Part shown: positions 9,028-55,491 of the stretch, piece after piece | How the letters are laid out: the number at the start of each line of letters is the position of its first letter | Position numbering within the stretch: the stretch's first letter is position 1 | Assembly: GCF_000006765.1 (NCBI RefSeq) | Contig: NC_002516.2 | Reading direction: 5' to 3' (one strand) | Origin: Pseudomonas aeruginosa PAO1 | Lineage (GTDB): Bacteria > Pseudomonadota > Gammaproteobacteria > Pseudomonadales > Pseudomonadaceae | Length of the DNA stretch: 64,000 nt | The notes under the pieces: model-generated | The model's input: only the letters and a program-made list of their open reading frames with translations | Told to the model about the DNA's origin: nothing | Databases searched by the model: none | Program-made: the position numbers and the translations under genes

Positions 9028-10322
9028 TCATCATCCACTCCGAGACCAACAAGACCACCATCCGGCAGAACCTCGGGCGCCCGGAGTACAGCTATTACTT
9101 CGTCCTCAAGGAATTCCGTCCGCTGCTGGAAGAGATCGGCCAGGTGGTCGAAGTCAGCGATCCCGACGAACTGGTGGACCGCCTCTACCACGACTGCCGC
9201 AAGCGCGGCGAACCCTGTGTCTTCCTCTCCTTCTCGCCGCCCCATCGCACGCCGATCCACCATGCCTGCCCGACCATCCCGGTGTTCGCCTGGGAGTTCA
9301 GCACCCTCCCCAGCGAAACCTGGCACGGCGAACCGCGCCACGACTGGCGACATGTGCTGCGCCACAGCGGACGGGCCATCACCCACTCCAGCTTCACGGT
9401 CGACGTGGTGCGCGCCGCCATGGGTCGCGACTACCCGGTACTGAGCGTGCCGGCGCCGGTCTGGGATCGCTTCGCCAACCGCGCCTCGCAGCAGGCGGGC
9501 CGTCCCGAAGCCCGGGATGTGCGCCTGCGCCTGGACGGCCTGCTGGTGGACAGCCGCCAGCTGGACCTGGCCGTCCATGCCGACCCCGAGCCGTCGGCGG
9601 AGGTCCTGGCCCTGCCGGACCGCGCGGCGAAACAGGTCGAGCTGAGCCTCGACGGGGTCATCTACACCTCGGTGTTCAACCCCTACGACGGGCGCAAGAA
9701 CTGGCAGGACATGATCAGCGCGTTCTGCGCCACCTTCCGCGACGAGCCCGACGCCACCCTGGTGCTGAAACTGACCCACCACAACGTCGGCGAAGCGCTG
9801 GCCGACATGCTTCACCACCTGTACAAGAACCAGTCCTACCGCTGCCGCATCGTGCTGATCCACGGCTACCTCGCCGACCCGGACTACGAGCGGCTGGTCG
9901 AGGCCACCAGCTACGTGGTGAACACCTCCTACGGCGAAGGCCAATGCCTGCCGCTGATGGAATTCATGTCCAGCGGCAAGCCGGCCGTGGCTCCGCGCAA
10001 TACCGCGATGATCGACTACATCGACGCCGACAACGCCTTCATCGTCGACTCCTCGGAAGAAGCCACCGCCTGGCCCCACGACCCGCGCGCGGCCTACCGC
10101 ACGCTGCGCTACATCACCGACTGGGAGTCGCTGTGCCGGGCCTACCGGGCCAGTTTCGAGGTCGCTCGCCAGGAGCCGGAGCGCTACGCACGCATGTCCG
10201 CGCATGCCAGCGCCAGCCTCGAACGCTTCTGCAGCCGCAAGCTGGCCGTGGAGCGCCTGCGTCGCTTCTTCGACGAAGCGGCACAAGGCGACCCCTCCGC
10301 CTTGCAAAGCATCCCGGCATGA
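9021..10322 (+). CDS. Glycosyltransferase (GT4-like), paralog of the upstream gene (PA5456-like)
   Basis: MLIIIHSET start. Shares LGRPEYSYYFVLK, SVFNPxDGRKNW and EGxCLPLMEFMS with 7399-9027. Confidence 0.87.
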   Translation: MLIIIHSETNKTTIRQNLGRPEYSYYFVLKEFRPLLEEIGQVVEVSDPDELVDRLYHDCRKRGEPCVFLSFSPPHRTPIHHACPTIPVFAWEFSTLPSETWHGEPRHDWRHVLRHSGRAITHSSFTVDVVRAAMGRDYPVLSVPAPVWDRFANRASQQAGRPEARDVRLRLDGLLVDSRQLDLAVHADPEPSAEVLALPDRAAKQVELSLDGVIYTSVFNPYDGRKNWQDMISAFCATFRDEPDATLVLKLTHHNVGEALADMLHHLYKNQSYRCRIVLIHGYLADPDYERLVEATSYVVNTSYGEGQCLPLMEFMSSGKPAVAPRNTAMIDYIDADNAFIVDSSEEATAWPHDPRAAYRTLRYITDWESLCRAYRASFEVARQEPERYARMSAHASASLERFCSRKLAVERLRRFFDEAAQGDPSALQSIPA

Positions 10323-48926: not shown

Positions 48927-49877
48927 ATGTCGGTGTTCACCCCACTCGAACGCTCGACCCTGGAAGCCTTCCTCGCCCCCTACGACCTGGGCCGCCTGCG
49001 GGATTTCCGTGGCATCGCCGAAGGCTCCGAGAACAGCAACTTCTTCGTCAGCCTGGAACACGGCGAGTTCGTCCTGACCCTGGTCGAGCGCGGCCCGGTG
49101 CAGGACCTGCCGTTCTTCATCGAACTGCTCGACGTGCTCCACGAGGACGGCCTGCCGGTGCCCTACGCCCTGCGCACCCGCGACGGCGAGGCCCTGCGCC
49201 GTCTCGAAGGCAAGCCGGCGCTGCTGCAACCGCGCCTGGCCGGCCGCCACGAGCGGCAGCCGAACGCCCACCACTGCCAGGAAGTGGGCGATCTGCTCGG
49301 CCACCTTCACGCCGCCACCCGCGGGCGCATCCTCGAACGCCCGAGCGACCGTGGCCTGCCCTGGATGCTGGAACAAGGTGCCAACCTCGCCCCGCGACTA
49401 CCGGAACAGGCCCGCGCCCTGCTCGCCCCGGCCCTGGCGGAGATCGCCGCGCTGGATGCCGAGCGTCCAGCGCTGCCGCGCGCCAACCTGCATGCCGACC
49501 TGTTCCGCGACAACGTGCTGTTCGACGGCCCGCACCTGGCCGGCCTGATCGACTTCTACAACGCCTGCTCCGGCTGGATGCTCTACGACCTGGCGATCAC
49601 CCTGAACGACTGGTGCTCCAATACCGACGGCAGCCTGGACCCGGCCCGCGCCCGCGCCCTGCTCGCCGCCTACGCCAACCGCCGGCCGTTCACCGCGCTG
49701 GAAGCCGAGCACTGGCCGAGCATGCTGCGGGTCGCCTGCGTGCGCTTCTGGCTGTCGCGACTGATCGCCGCCGAGGCGTTCGCCGGACAGGACGTGCTGA
49801 TCCATGATCCGGCGGAGTTCGAGATACGCCTGGCGCAACGGCAGAACGTGGAGATTCATTTGCCGTTTGCGTTGTAG
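48927..49877 (+). CDS. thrB: Homoserine kinase (Pseudomonas/APH type)
   Basis: MSVFT, GIAEGSENSNF, HADLFRDNVLF, IDFYNAC. Confidence 0.93.
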   Translation: MSVFTPLERSTLEAFLAPYDLGRLRDFRGIAEGSENSNFFVSLEHGEFVLTLVERGPVQDLPFFIELLDVLHEDGLPVPYALRTRDGEALRRLEGKPALLQPRLAGRHERQPNAHHCQEVGDLLGHLHAATRGRILERPSDRGLPWMLEQGANLAPRLPEQARALLAPALAEIAALDAERPALPRANLHADLFRDNVLFDGPHLAGLIDFYNACSGWMLYDLAITLNDWCSNTDGSLDPARARALLAAYANRRPFTALEAEHWPSMLRVACVRFWLSRLIAAEAFAGQDVLIHDPAEFEIRLAQRQNVEIHLPFAL

Positions 49878-49896
49878 GCAGGAACCACAGGAGCAC

Positions 49897-50165
49897 GGCC
49901 GTCCTGCGGCCGTTCGCCCTTCAAAAACCATGCGGTTCGGCGTCTCGGAGTGAGGCCGAGCCGACATCCTGTCGAGGCCTCGTCGTTCAGCCCACCCCCA
50001 GCCCGGCCATCCTGGCCGGTCGTTCGCATTGAAAAACCCATGCGGTTCGGCGTCTGGGGTGAGGCCGAGCCGACATCCTGTCGAGGCCTCGTCGTTCAGC
50101 CCACCCCCGGCCCGGCCATCCTGGCCGGTCGTTCGCCCTTCAAAACGCATCCGTTTTGAACGGGC
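49897..50165. repeat. About 2.3 copies of a 109-110 bp tandem repeat with internal hairpins
   Basis: CCATGCGGTTCGG starts at 49928 and 50038; a partial copy precedes at 49897. From memory this is where the MLVA marker ms217 lies (unverified). Confidence 0.9.
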
Positions 50166-50855
50166 TCACCCACATTTCGAGTGTCCGCAGTTGAGGCAGG
50201 TGGCGCAGCCGTCCATCTGTACCACCGCCATGCTGTTGCACTTGCCGCACAGTTGCGCGCCGGCGGGGAAGCCTTCGCCCGGCTCGACCTTGCTGGTGCC
50301 CTGGGCGGCCTCGTAGGCGGCGCGTTTTTCCGCGAGGAAAAGACGCTGTTCCTCGTCCAGTTCAGGGCCACGCAACAGGCCGATGGCCGTCAGGTGGCGC
50401 TCCAGCACGCCGCCGATCTCGGCGACGATGGAAGGCATGTAGATGCCGCCTTTCTTCAGGTAGCCCCCGCGCGGGTCGAATACCGCCTTGAGTTCCTCGA
50501 CAAGGAAGGTGCAGTCGCCGCCCTTGCGGAAAACCGCGGACATGATGCGGGTAAGTGCGACGATCCACTGGAAATGATCCATGTTCTTCGAGTTGATGAA
50601 GATCTCGAAGGGACGCCGCTGCTCGTGCGCCGTGCCCGCGTTGAGGACCATGTCGTTGATGGTCACGTAGAGCGCGTGCTCGAACAGCGGCGACTTGATC
50701 TTGTAGGTGGCGCCGATCAGGGTATCCGGGCGCTCCAGGGTCTCGTCCATCTGCACCACCGACGCGGCTTCCGCGGCGGCGGCAAGGGCCTGCTCCTCGG
50801 CTTCGTTGACGACCTTGAAGCCCTTGATCTTCTGCGTGATCTTGACTGCTGACAT
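50166..50855 (-). CDS. nrdJb: Class II ribonucleotide reductase, small (C-terminal) subunit
   Basis: TSCPD-like domain (RPFEIFINSK) and C-terminal Cys cluster CGKC...CATCLNCGHSKCG. Confidence 0.92.
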   Translation of the reverse strand: MSAVKITQKIKGFKVVNEAEEQALAAAAEAASVVQMDETLERPDTLIGATYKIKSPLFEHALYVTINDMVLNAGTAHEQRRPFEIFINSKNMDHFQWIVALTRIMSAVFRKGGDCTFLVEELKAVFDPRGGYLKKGGIYMPSIVAEIGGVLERHLTAIGLLRGPELDEEQRLFLAEKRAAYEAAQGTSKVEPGEGFPAGAQLCGKCNSMAVVQMDGCATCLNCGHSKCG

Positions 50856-50871
50856 ATCGATTCCCCCGGCC

Positions 50872-53016
50872 TCAGTACTTGCCGTAATAGCCTTCTTTCA
50901 AGGCGTCGAAGAGGTTGGCGGCGGTATGGATCTCACCGTCGTACTCGACCTGCTCGTTGCCCTTGAACTCCACCACGCTGCCGTCCTCCAGTTCGAAGCG
51001 GTAGCGGGTCTTCTCCAGGTCGGACTCCTTGACCAGCACGCCCTGGAACGCCTCGGGATTGAAGCGGAAGGTGGTGCAGCCCTTGAGTCCCTGGTGCCAG
51101 GCGTAGCGGTAGATGTCCTTGAAGTCCTCGAACGGGTAGTCGGTGGGCACGTTGGCGGTCTTGGAGATCGACGAATCGACCCACTTCTGCGCCGCCGCCT
51201 GGATGTCCATGTGCTGCGCCGGGGTGACGCTGTCGGCGGTGATGAAGTAGTCCGGCAGGCGTCGCGCCGGGTCGTCGCTGTCCGGCAGGGCCTGGGCGTT
51301 GACCAGGGTCCGGTATGCCAGCAGCTCGTAGCTGTAGACCTCGACCTTTTCCTTGGTCTTGCGGCCTTCGCGGATAAGGTTGCGCGAATAATGGTGGGCG
51401 AAGCTCGGCTCGATACCGTTGGAGGCATTGTTGGCCAGGCTCAGGCTGATGGTCCCGGTCGGCGCGATGGAGCTGTGGTGAGTGAAGCGCGCGCCGGTTT
51501 CAGCCAACGCCTCGATCAGTTCCGGAGCATGTTCGGCGACCCGCTGCATGTAGCGGGAATACTTGGCGTGAAGCACGCTGCCGCGGATGCGGTCGCCGGC
51601 CTTATAGCCATCGGCGGCCATTTCCGGACGCTTGCGAAGCATTTCCGCAGTGACTTCGTAGTCCTGCGCCAGGATCGGCGCCGGGCCCTTCTCCCTGGCC
51701 AGCTCCAGGGCCACTTCCCAGCCCACCAGGGCCATTTCCCGCGCCACTTCCTCGGTGAATACGCAGGCCTCGGGACTGCCGTAGCGCAGCTTGAGCAGGG
51801 TCAGGGTCGAGCCCAGGCCGAGGAAGCCCATGCCATGCCGGCGCTTGCCAAGGATTTCCTGGCGTTGCTGTTCCAGCGGCAGGCCGTTGATTTCCACCAC
51901 GTTGTCGAGCATCCGGGTAAACACCCGCACCACTTCGCGGAAACGGTCCCAGTCGAAGCGCGCCTCGTCGCCAAATGGCTGCTCGACGAAGCAGGTGAGG
52001 TTGACCGAGCCGAGCAGACACGAGCCGTACGGCGGCAGAGGCTGCTCGCCGCAGGGGTTGGTGGCGCGAATCGCCTCGCACCACCAGTTGTTGTTCAGTT
52101 CGTTGACCCGGTCGATGAGGATGAAGCCCGGCTCCGCATAGTCGTAGGTGGAGACCATGATCATGTCCCACAGGTGGCGGGCGCGGACCTGGCCGTAGAC
52201 CTTGCAGGCGACCAGCCCGTCGGCGCGCTGGACGTAGTCGTCCTGGATCGGCCATTCGCGCCAGACCACCGCGTTGGGGTCGTCGAGGTCGATCTCGTCG
52301 CGCTCCTTCACGTGCACCGGGAATACCAGCGGCCAGTCGGCGTCCTGTTCCACCGCCTGCATGAACTGGTCGGTGATCAGCAGGCTCAGGTTGAACTGGC
52401 GCAAGCGCCCGTCCTCGCGCTTGGCGCGGATGAATTCGCGGACGTCCGGGTGGCTGACATCGAAGGTGCCCATCTGCGCGCCGCGGCGGCCGCCGGCGGA
52501 GCTGACGGTGAAGCACATCTTGTCGTAGATGTCCATGAACGACAGCGGCCCGCTGGTGTAGGCACCGGCACCGGAAACGTAGGCGCCGCGCGGGCGCAGG
52601 GTGCTGAACTCATAGCCGATGCCGCAGCCGGCCTTGAGCGTCAGGCCGGCCTCGTGGACTTTCTCGAGGATGTTGTCCATGGAGTCCTGGATGGTCCCGG
52701 ACACGGTGCAGTTGATGGTCGAGGTGGCCGGCTTGTGCCCCAGGGCGCCGGCATTGGAAATGATCCGGCCGGCCGGGATGGCGCCGTTGCGCAGGGCCCA
52801 GAGGAAGCGCCCGTACCAGTGTTCGCGGGAGGCCTTGTCCTCGACATCGGCAAGGGCGCGGGCGACGCGTTGCCAGGTACCGTCGACGCTGGCATCCACC
52901 GGCGTACCGTCCTTGCTCTTGAGCCGGTACTTCTTGTCCCAGATATCCTGCGACGCGTCCTGCAGGGCGATGGTCCCGCGTTCGGTGCGGGGACTGCGTG
53001 CGTCTGTCTTGGCCAT
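50872..53016 (-). CDS. nrdJa: Class II (B12-dependent) ribonucleotide reductase, catalytic subunit
   Basis: PAGRI, STINC, ATNPCGEQ, APTGTIS. Start placed at MAKTD (GGGAGG RBS); the ORF is open to 53076. Confidence 0.93.
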   Translation of the reverse strand: MAKTDARSPRTERGTIALQDASQDIWDKKYRLKSKDGTPVDASVDGTWQRVARALADVEDKASREHWYGRFLWALRNGAIPAGRIISNAGALGHKPATSTINCTVSGTIQDSMDNILEKVHEAGLTLKAGCGIGYEFSTLRPRGAYVSGAGAYTSGPLSFMDIYDKMCFTVSSAGGRRGAQMGTFDVSHPDVREFIRAKREDGRLRQFNLSLLITDQFMQAVEQDADWPLVFPVHVKERDEIDLDDPNAVVWREWPIQDDYVQRADGLVACKVYGQVRARHLWDMIMVSTYDYAEPGFILIDRVNELNNNWWCEAIRATNPCGEQPLPPYGSCLLGSVNLTCFVEQPFGDEARFDWDRFREVVRVFTRMLDNVVEINGLPLEQQRQEILGKRRHGMGFLGLGSTLTLLKLRYGSPEACVFTEEVAREMALVGWEVALELAREKGPAPILAQDYEVTAEMLRKRPEMAADGYKAGDRIRGSVLHAKYSRYMQRVAEHAPELIEALAETGARFTHHSSIAPTGTISLSLANNASNGIEPSFAHHYSRNLIREGRKTKEKVEVYSYELLAYRTLVNAQALPDSDDPARRLPDYFITADSVTPAQHMDIQAAAQKWVDSSISKTANVPTDYPFEDFKDIYRYAWHQGLKGCTTFRFNPEAFQGVLVKESDLEKTRYRFELEDGSVVEFKGNEQVEYDGEIHTAANLFDALKEGYYGKY

Positions 53017-53068
53017 CCGCTGATTAACCTCCCGATGGTTGTTGGGGCGTCCGAAGCCGGCCACCGTA

Positions 53069-53114
53069 CGCAACATCTAGTTATCCGTACCTGACGGGAA
53101 TCAATATCTTGTGT
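53069..53114 (-). promoter_or_regulatory. Two NrdR boxes 31 bp apart, with an overlapping Anr/Dnr-like site
   Basis: Minus strand ACACAAGATATTGATT and ATAACTAGATGTTGCG; TTGAT-TCCC-GTCAG at 53091-53104. Confidence 0.7.
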
Positions 53115-54682: not shown

Positions 54683-55491
54683 TGGACAACGCGCTGGTGC
54701 GGCTGACCCAGGTCGGCGTGTCCTTCAACGGCCAGGCAGTGCTGAGCGATGTCGACCTGGCCATCGAGCCCGGCCAGATCGTCACCCTGATCGGCCCCAA
54801 CGGCGCCGGCAAGACCACCCTGGTACGCAGCGTGCTCGGCCTGCTCAAGCCGCACGTCGGCGAGGTCTGGCGACGGCCGCGGCTGACCATCGGCTACATG
54901 CCGCAGAAACTCCACGTCGACGCCACCCTGCCGCTCAGCGTACTGCGCTTCCTCCGCCTGGTACCCGGGGTCAAGCGCGAGCAGGCGCTGGCGGCGTTGC
55001 GCGAGGTCGGCGCGGCGCACGTGCTGGAGCGCCCGCTGCAAAGCATTTCCGGCGGCGAACTGCAACGCGTGCTGCTGGCCCGCGCCCTGCTGCGCAAGCC
55101 CGAGCTGCTGGTGCTCGACGAGCCGGTGCAGGGCGTCGACGTCGCCGGCCAGGCTGAACTCTACCGCCTCATCGGCAAACTGCGCGACCGCTACGGCTGC
55201 GGTGTGCTGATGGTCTCCCACGACCTGCACCTGGTGATGAGCGCCACCGACCAGGTGGTCTGCCTGAACCGCCACGTCTGCTGCTCCGGGCACCCCGAGC
55301 AGGTCAGCGGCGACCCGGCGTTCGTCGAGCTGTTCGGCCAGGACGCTCGCAGCCTGGCGATCTACCACCACCATCACGACCACGCCCACGACCTCCACGG
55401 CGAGGTGGTCAAGGCCGGTCCCGGCGCCTTGCCTCCAGGCACCCGCTTCACTCCTGTCCACAAGCACGGCCCCGACTGCAACCATGGCTGA
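54682..55491 (+). CDS. znuC: Zinc ABC transporter ATPase with His-rich tail
   Basis: [23 protein letters not shown]-terminal HHHHDHAH. Confidence 0.95.

Follow-up and report, generated by a model that had tools for sequence, protein, structure and literature searches.

The strain-typing repeat ms217 behind nrdJb of Pseudomonas aeruginosa is a tandemly amplified gene-ending element whose small hairpins carry the Csr/Rsm consensus

A spacer of 288 bp lies between the convergent genes nrdJb and thrB of Pseudomonas aeruginosa PAO1. It contains 2.4 tandem copies of a 109-bp unit, and the locus raises the question of what kind of element this repeat is. The spacer lies within the 64-kb stretch of NC_002516.2 that was analysed here (hereafter the window) and follows the nrdJb stop codon, at 50166-50168 on the minus strand. 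A sequence-only reading had described it, on the messenger RNA strand, as an array of six GGA hairpins resembling a CsrB/RsmZ-type sponge. We find that the spacer is the marker ms217 of multiple-locus variable-number tandem repeat analysis, and that it consists of tandemly amplified copies of a structured gene-ending element, widespread and strand-specific, two small hairpins of which carry the Csr/Rsm consensus.

The array was detected by Tandem Repeats Finder at 49892..50150 (minus strand; 109-bp unit x2.4, score 420, 88% matches), and 109 bp is the published unit length of ms217 (PMC8322141, table 3). The ms217 primers have unique matches at 49746-49765 and 50332-50351, flanking the array, and define an amplicon of 606 bp in the window. 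The statement that the locus is a strain-typing variable-number tandem repeat (VNTR) was thereby borne out. In the typing literature ms217 is treated as a neutral length marker, whereas here it is an array of a structured-element family. No assignment of ms217 to a repeat family was found in the searchable literature, nor any link between RsmA and nrdJ, ms217 or VNTRs, or between CsrA and repetitive extragenic palindromes (REPs).

All six hairpins that had been claimed were located, strand-specific and each with its GGA at the apex. Exactly six GGA triplets occur in the 291 nt that follow the nrdJb stop on the minus strand, and 6/6 sit at hairpin apexes. The first hairpin, TTCAAAACGGATGCGTTTTGAA (50160-50139), was located both in the sequence and in the folds. 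It is followed by a hairpin termed HA, CCGGCCAGGATGGCCGG (50112..50128; CCGGCC-AGGAU-GGCCGG), which is identical in all P. aeruginosa units, and by a hairpin termed HB (50061..50090), in which an outer stem GAGGCC/GGCCUC encloses the inner stem-loop CGACAGGATGTCG (50071-50083; CGAC-AGGAU-GUCG) with its invariant loop. The second unit repeats HA (50003..50019) and HB (49952..49981, inner stem-loop at 49962-49974). A terminal hairpin, GGCCGCAGGACGGCC (49895..49913, core 49897-49911; ACGGCCG-CAGGA-CGGCCGU), is the diverged HA of a partial third unit; it lies 18 nt past the convergent thrB stop and is present in one copy in every P. aeruginosa strain compared. By partition function the GGA positions, apart from the first G in hairpin 1, are predicted to be unpaired with a probability of at least 0.90, the mean over the stretch being 0.33. 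Nowhere else in the window, on either strand, are GGA triplets presented in hairpins at such density (5 in 300 nt vs a background of 1.2 per kb). The array has four CAGGAUG loops and one CAGGAC loop; other alleles have 2-8 CAGGAUG. Two hairpin types in 2.4 copies and one unique hairpin make up the six sites, so these do not represent six independent events.

We compared ten P. aeruginosa loci, all of which encode an identical NrdJb protein. Their spacers measure 179, 288, 396-398 or 505-508 bp, corresponding to 1, 2, 3 and 4 full units. It had been claimed that each unit of about 110 bp adds two sites, and the 109-bp unit indeed holds one HA and one HB; the conserved site count per array is 2n+1, with n = 1-4 among the strains compared. 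The 14 distinct full units differ at 17 columns out of 110, all of them outside the linker and HA block GCGAACGACCGGCCAGGATGGCCGGGC and the HB loop CAGGATGTC. Hairpin 1, by contrast, has its GGA in PAO1-type sequences alone (the window, L001 and L004), while 7 of the ten loci read ACGCAUGCG. This GGA is a lineage-specific single-base change, GCAUGC to GGAUGC, that gives the PAO1-type reading ACGGAUG. The stem of this hairpin comes in two versions in P. aeruginosa, with every change compensated: UUCAAAACG/CGUUUUGAA with GCCC/GGGC vs UUGAAAAACG/CGUUUUUCAA with GCA/UGC. The proposed six-hairpin array is therefore right in its positions, but one of its GGA sites is peculiar to PAO1-type sequences and its independent hairpin types number only three.

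A single-copy homologue follows the nrdJb stop in P. citronellolis, P. jinjuensis and three further Pseudomonas spp. (L012, L013 and L020, the record of the last being titled 'Enterobacterales bacterium'), and it remains beside nrdJb also where thrB does not adjoin. The order of its parts is GGGUGAGC, whose UGA is the stop codon, a hairpin, the linker GCGAACGAC, HA, a variable spacer and HB. The first hairpin reads GCGACG-CAUG-CGUCGC, with the compensated GCGAAG...CUUCGC in P. jinjuensis; HA reads CCGGCC-A[U/G/A]GGAU-GGCCGG, with the compensated CUGGCC...GGCCAG in one species; and HB reads (C)G[A/G]C-AGGGAU-G[U/C]C(G), with a stem pair that covaries between A-U and G-C. The loops of these citronellolis-group homologues are hexaloops, A-N-GGA-U. 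Between P. aeruginosa and the citronellolis-group species the HA block and the HB loop are approximately 90-100% conserved, and the same comparison gives an identity of only 65-73% at third codon positions over the final 300 nt of nrdJb. Conservation in excess of that at adjacent synonymous sites indicates that the HA and HB cores are under constraint. One Pseudomonas sp. (L011) retains just the head and a few bases behind nrdJb, so the element can be lost, and no copies near nrdJb were found in Stutzerimonas, Dyella, Rhodanobacter and others.

The element is not confined to nrdJb. Metagenome contigs were searched with a pattern drawn from the linker and HA, and the resulting family comprises at least 120 metagenomic relatives in addition to copies in Xanthomonas sacchari and P. 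otitidis. It can be written as the pattern GGGTGAGC...GCGAACGNCNGGCCANGGATGGCC or, alternatively, as a covariance model, R1, which is defined by the head GGGUGAGC, a covarying 5' hairpin, a GCGAACGNC linker, HA and HB, in that order; the ms217 unit has all of these. The element is about 110 nt long, and its head is invariant across the family and lies outside the search pattern. R1 matches the first unit and head in full at 50060..50171 (minus strand; 72.3 bits, E 3e-18) and the second unit at 49951-50039 (minus strand; 50.1 bits), and it scores 86-98 bits in other Pseudomonas spp. and X. sacchari. No further copy in the window scores above 12 bits; weak matches on the minus strand at 55246-55370 and 9558-9682 (12 and 10.6 bits, E 0.045 and 0.11) are probably due to chance.

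The secondary structure of the family was assessed with RNAalifold and a pair count over 77 sequences, in which 99% of cells were paired. Both-side changes were seen in 117 cells vs 29.5+-4.1 in shuffles, none of 500 shuffles reaching the observed value; the stems covary. When the 3' partner was shifted by 1-3 columns as a control, only 16-42% of cells paired. The arms of the long 5' hairpin have wholly different sequences between copies and their pairing is always kept. Of the seven HA stem pairs the search pattern fixed six; the one left free covaries (CG 64, UA 5, AU 2, GC 1). HB was outside the pattern, yet it was found in 80/88 members. Its loops are A-N-GGA-N, with GGA fixed and N free (e.g. 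AUGGAU, AGGGAU, AGGGAC, AUGGAG), and the HA and HB GGA triplets are spaced 41-42 nt apart in 54/80 copies despite the variable spacer sequence. Loop GGA proved better conserved than the flanking bases in the P. aeruginosa units, in other species and in the large family, a point on which the sequence-only reading had staked itself in advance.

In the window copy the 5' domain is a long hairpin (50131..50169, minus strand) that includes the first hairpin (50139-50160). The head (50164..50171, minus strand) provides the nrdJb stop with its UGA (50166-50168). Head and linker pair as GU-GA...GA-AC, in which two Watson-Crick pairs flank tandem G.A pairs, and they do so on the sense strand only; this pairing explains why head and linker are both conserved. 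The 5' domain is more stable in the sense than in the antisense orientation in 71/88 copies (G-U pairs 28 vs 11). A K-turn was considered and dropped, because the tandem G.A pairs are present but the bulge is absent.

The head also supplies the stop codon of other genes. In 39/51 arrays (those with a co-oriented upstream open reading frame and coding-type G+C content at third codon positions) the upstream reading frame terminates at the UGA of the head. In X. sacchari (NZ_CP010410.1, L211 1501-1900) an ABC-permease coding sequence annotated by the NCBI pipeline PGAP ends exactly at the UGA of the element, and an array of about 3.5 units comes next. The upstream genes are unrelated to each other: XerD (100% identical to the P. 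otitidis protein), Rho (from a Thiodiazotropha/Sedimenticola-like gammaproteobacterium), an SdhB-like and a MoaD-like protein, both identified by eye from C-terminal residues alone, and the ABC permease. All hosts named so far are Gammaproteobacteria. Species without the element end the same genes with GGC-UGA, GGU-UGA or GGC-UAA (e.g. L213 2390-2400 and the nrdJb ends of L014-L032); the GGG-UGA of the element thus replaces a native Gly-stop end and leaves the protein unchanged, which hints that a short match to the head may direct insertion.

Other hosts also have tandem arrays, with periods from 67 to 120 nt, and the array junction is the same as in P. aeruginosa, internal units retaining only the 3' half of the first hairpin. 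In the xerD-dsbC spacer of P. otitidis (L212 2092-2300) two 101-nt units directly adjoin the xerD stop and a hairpin+U5 terminator comes after them, and this order places the array within the transcript. Behind xerD, the copy of M. furukawaii is decayed and without HA, and M. resinovorans and P. solani have only head remnants (L216, L218, L219). An xerD-linked copy in P. aeruginosa was not found among the 120 listed XerD matches, which included P. otitidis and relatives and no P. aeruginosa; cluster P0068 was rejected as the P. aeruginosa xerD locus, as it belongs to a different species and is without the element.

This distribution raises the alternative that the family is a selfish or neutral dispersed repeat, of the kind of REPs or miniature inverted-repeat transposable elements (MITEs), whose loops would be recognised as DNA or single-stranded DNA by a copying machinery that targets Gly-TGA gene ends. 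The ms217 array would then result from replication slippage between hairpins and have no regulatory role, and its match to the RsmA motif would be incidental or occasionally exploited. Dispersal behind xerD, rho, sdhB-like, moaD-like and ABC-permease genes fits this explanation, as do the tandem arrays in many hosts, the decay of copies to head remnants, the replacement of native GGN-TGA ends with no change of protein, and a GCC/GGC stem sequence more conserved than an RsmA site would require. One metagenome assembly contains at least three related copies, two of them on one contig, which points the same way. As with REPs, bacterial interspersed mosaic elements and MITE-like repeats, the element is short, structured and multi-copy, lies at gene 3' ends, probably co-transcribed with the upstream gene, and shows local amplification and decay at some loci. 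Unlike those repeats, it is strictly co-oriented with the upstream gene, supplies its stop, favours structure on the sense strand and carries a protein-binding consensus in its loops; no REP head of the GTAG/CGTC type, terminal inverted repeats, target duplications or transposase were noticed in flank alignments, in which no systematic search was made. The HA and HB cores of the nrdJb copy are kept above the synonymous-site level over the P. aeruginosa/citronellolis divergence, and a fixed A and GGA with a free N is the pattern expected of Csr/Rsm sites. We regard a purely selfish or neutral repeat as possible and rather unlikely.

The three related copies just mentioned (L118, L133 and L134, on contigs JABAHQ010000572.1 and JABAHQ010000148.1 of one whole-genome shotgun project prefix) belong to a short-hairpin subfamily. 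They share approximately 50 nt of upstream sequence as well, which makes the cassette one part of a longer repeat dispersed in that genome. Another copy (L106, Ga0256832_1001072) follows a duplicated 5' part of a tRNA, with the junction in the D-loop (…CAGTTGG|GTGAGC…) and the intact tRNA about 120 nt downstream; as this is the only case beside a tRNA, a tRNA-derived element was dropped. Viral contigs gave 0 family matches, and plasmid records gave one, the X. sacchari record NZ_CP010410.1, which is labelled a 508-kb plasmid, carries housekeeping-type genes, is typed non-mobilizable and looks chromosomal. A phage or plasmid origin was rejected on these grounds. A selenocysteine insertion or read-through signal was likewise dropped, because many copies do not have the head UGA in frame and the periods are not divisible by three, and so was a CRISPR-like or ToxI-like array, for which unique spacers are lacking and the period is wrong.

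We next consider what the small hairpins resemble. The site of RsmA and RsmF(N) is CANGGAYG with GGA in the loop of a stem-loop, RsmF requiring at least two such sites, and crosslinking and immunoprecipitation sequencing (CLIP-seq) in vivo found ANGGA in apical loops. Across the family the sequence of HA is CCA-N-GGAUGG and that of HB is CCA-N-GGA-N-GG, where GGA is followed by a pyrimidine in most HB loops; both agree with this consensus at every base. In P. aeruginosa both read CAGGAUG, the CsrB repeat, without the N. At the level of sequence the array thus offers what RsmA/RsmF(N) sites call for, namely CANGGAYG-type motifs in at least two stem-loops with GGA predicted to be unpaired. CsrB/RsmB, RsmX/Y/Z and RsmV sponges are similar in having several hairpins with CAGGAUG or CANGGAYG loops, and the likeness to RsmX goes further: the 109-nt unit is of similar size to the rsmX model and aligns with it end to end, and HB, CGACAGGAUGUCG, nearly equals the rsmX consensus hairpin cGaCAGGaaGuCg. 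However, the Csr/Rsm sponges are free-standing genes with their own (GacA/UvrY-dependent) promoter and terminator, whereas the present element begins within the nrdJb stop codon, belongs to a dispersed repeat family and varies in copy number between strains.

RsmW is reportedly an RsmA-binding RNA derived from a 3' untranslated region (UTR). It has been named as an RsmA sponge, and it is like the ms217 element in being an Rsm-binding RNA downstream of a coding gene rather than a GacA-driven free-standing gene; its sequence is unrelated, and the ms217 element is tandemly repeated and dispersed across genomes. The TwoAYGGAY motif (RF01731; Weinberg et al. 2010, PMC2864571) also has two A-Y-GGA-Y hairpins, occurs in Gammaproteobacteria and is placed in the Csr/Rsm clan in Rfam. 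It differs in that only single HA hairpins match, at model positions 50-71 of 168, and the present family has the GGGUGAGC head, the stop-codon position, the long 5' hairpin and any N before GGA.

In a subfamily the spacer carries AUCC, the complement of loop GGAU, at a fixed position 10 nt after HA (18/88 copies, e.g. L096, L101, L181). AUCC lies anywhere in the 30 nt after HA in 24/88 copies vs approximately 5% in shuffles, and it is absent from Pseudomonas copies. A kissing or masking interaction between AUCC and GGAU is possible in that subfamily. A partner other than RsmA, either an RNA-binding protein or an RNA, might accordingly be bound by AYGGAY-type loops, with spacer AUCC pairing with loop GGAU where it occurs. 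The excess of AUCC at the fixed position over the 5% expected speaks for such a partner, and TwoAYGGAY, the nearest Rfam motif at the hairpin level, is likewise without an established function in its description (PMC2864571). No candidate partner is known, however, P. aeruginosa and citronellolis-group copies lack AUCC, and the eight-base CANGGAYG match is exact in most loops, so we give this alternative little likelihood.

Returning to RsmA, the array would have to be part of the nrdJab messenger RNA. It is flush with the stop codon and no intrinsic terminator precedes it, which makes co-transcription likely, and ms217 would then be the 3' UTR of nrdJab. No sigma-70-like promoter was found in 49500-50600, a GacA box not having been specifically searched for. 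Within the array no intrinsic terminator was convincing; the lone candidate, a weak 5-bp one at 50163-50151, exists in the PAO1-type sequence only, and HA, HB and the terminal hairpin have no U tract behind them. The proposal of a CsrB/RsmZ-type sponge therefore keeps its CAGGAUG loop motif and loses its status as a recognisable member of that class, with scores below the Rfam thresholds and no promoter of its own found.

A position between convergent genes also invites the explanation that the hairpins are a generic, REP-like protector of the messenger RNA 3' end or an nrdJb/thrB insulator, blocking 3' exonucleases or read-through independently of RsmA. The fold is very stable relative to shuffles on both strands (z = -4.3 sense, -5.3 opposite), the P. 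otitidis array stands between the xerD stop and a hairpin+U5 terminator, and the long 5' hairpin abuts the stop codon as in some REPs. A single hairpin would suffice for protection, however, and this explanation leaves the invariant A-N-GGA-N loops and the 41-42-nt spacing unaccounted for; the terminator candidate described above adds nothing convincing. We consider it very improbable.

The explanation that we favour is that the ms217 3' UTR array is bound by RsmA/RsmN at its HA-HB pairs, with effects on the nrdJab messenger RNA; judged from the sequence and predicted structure, we put its chances at about even. Arrays would grow by duplication from the loop of one first hairpin to the loop of the next, so that each extra unit adds one HA-HB pair and the 3' UTR would present 2n+1 CAGGAUG-type hairpin sites. 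Dimers of RsmA/RsmN may bind these sites, one dimer bridging each HA-HB pair, 40-42 nt apart. Binding would act mainly in cis, by altering how stable the nrdJab messenger RNA is or how it is processed, and such a local effect is likelier than global sequestration; titration of RsmA/RsmN, scaling with repeat number when the operon is induced, would be secondary.

Several observations weigh against binding by RsmA/RsmN. The nrdJab messenger RNA is unlikely to rival RsmY/RsmZ in abundance. The P. aeruginosa loops are pentaloops, AGGAU, the N having been lost in both HA and HB. In the metagenome set HA is invariant partly because the search pattern demanded it, so this invariance proves nothing. 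The cassette stands behind unrelated housekeeping genes and has decayed behind xerD in three P. otitidis relatives and behind nrdJb in one Pseudomonas sp., and such dispersal and decay are the behaviour of a dispensable repeat. Matches to known Csr/Rsm families stay below the gathering thresholds: CsrB/RsmB (RF00018) scores 13.4 bits vs 71 on the window (E 0.58), RsmX (RF02144) 22.2, 19.5 and 17.4 bits vs 56, one match per unit of the 4-unit allele L002, and TwoAYGGAY (RF01731) 19, 16.9 and 16.9 bits vs 43, all three matches being to single HA hairpins in the array of X. sacchari. Membership of CsrB, RsmX and TwoAYGGAY was rejected for this reason. Even so, the only coherent weak Rfam matches in E-value scans fall in the Csr/Rsm clan CL00106, and these sub-threshold matches are best read as a resemblance in possible working, not as family membership. 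A scan of 17 family loci at the Rfam 15 gathering thresholds returned nothing but a tRNA.

Contact of RsmA with the transcript has some published support. The split class II ribonucleotide reductase (50166..53076, minus strand) consists of nrdJa (reading frame 50872-53076; NCBIfam TIGR02504, 606 bits) and nrdJb (reading frame 50166-50855, matching the C-terminal part of the NCBIfam model of the B12-dependent reductase). A compilation of RsmA targets from the literature has PA5496 and PA5497 under ChIPPAR-seq and PA5497 also under RNA sequencing. The ribosome-binding region of nrdJa, GUACGGAUAACUAGAUG (53090-53074, minus strand), has ACGGAU, an A-N-GGA-N a few bases before the start codon, and is a plausible conventional candidate for an RsmA site at the 5' end of the operon. 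Because of this second site the ChIPPAR-seq listing cannot be assigned to the 3' UTR; it supports contact of RsmA with the operon transcript and not specifically with the array. The running text of the CLIP-seq preprint names neither nrdJ nor PA5496. The convergent neighbour thrB (48927..49877, plus strand; NCBIfam NF003558, 384 bits) encodes homoserine kinase, and the array is antisense to it. The further idea of an anaerobically induced decoy that ties class II ribonucleotide reductase to biofilm control found no support beyond the known biology of the gene: with the cassette behind unrelated housekeeping genes and decayed at some loci, nothing ties it specifically to this enzyme, to anoxia or to biofilm.

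Whatever its ligand, the family is distinct in being co-oriented with the upstream gene, in installing GGG-UGA at Gly-stop ends and in its tandem amplification in several hosts. It is apparently undescribed, as no Rfam 15 model reaches threshold and no description was found in the searchable literature, and it relates to known kinds of element on two sides, the Csr/Rsm-binding RNAs and the REP/MITE-like repeats. A broader proposition, which we hold as distinctly doubtful, is that there is a class of portable gammaproteobacterial 3'-end cassettes, each made up of a stop codon, a protective hairpin and one pair of CsrA/RsmA sites at optimal spacing, in which amplification would tune the regulator load per messenger RNA; ms217 would then be a strain-variable RsmA/RsmN dosage element. 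We know of no described RsmA-sequestering RNA in Xanthomonas-like bacteria, and if such a class exists, the cassettes could be part of the sequestering capacity there. Known Csr/Rsm control works through 5' leaders and dedicated sponge genes; if RsmA/RsmN binds, modular 3'-end cassettes across Pseudomonas, Xanthomonas and sulfur-oxidiser-like Gammaproteobacteria would be a new Csr/Rsm architecture. In P. aeruginosa itself, such binding would make a typing marker into a functional polymorphism, with 2 to 8 or more sites on the nrdJab messenger RNA depending on the strain.

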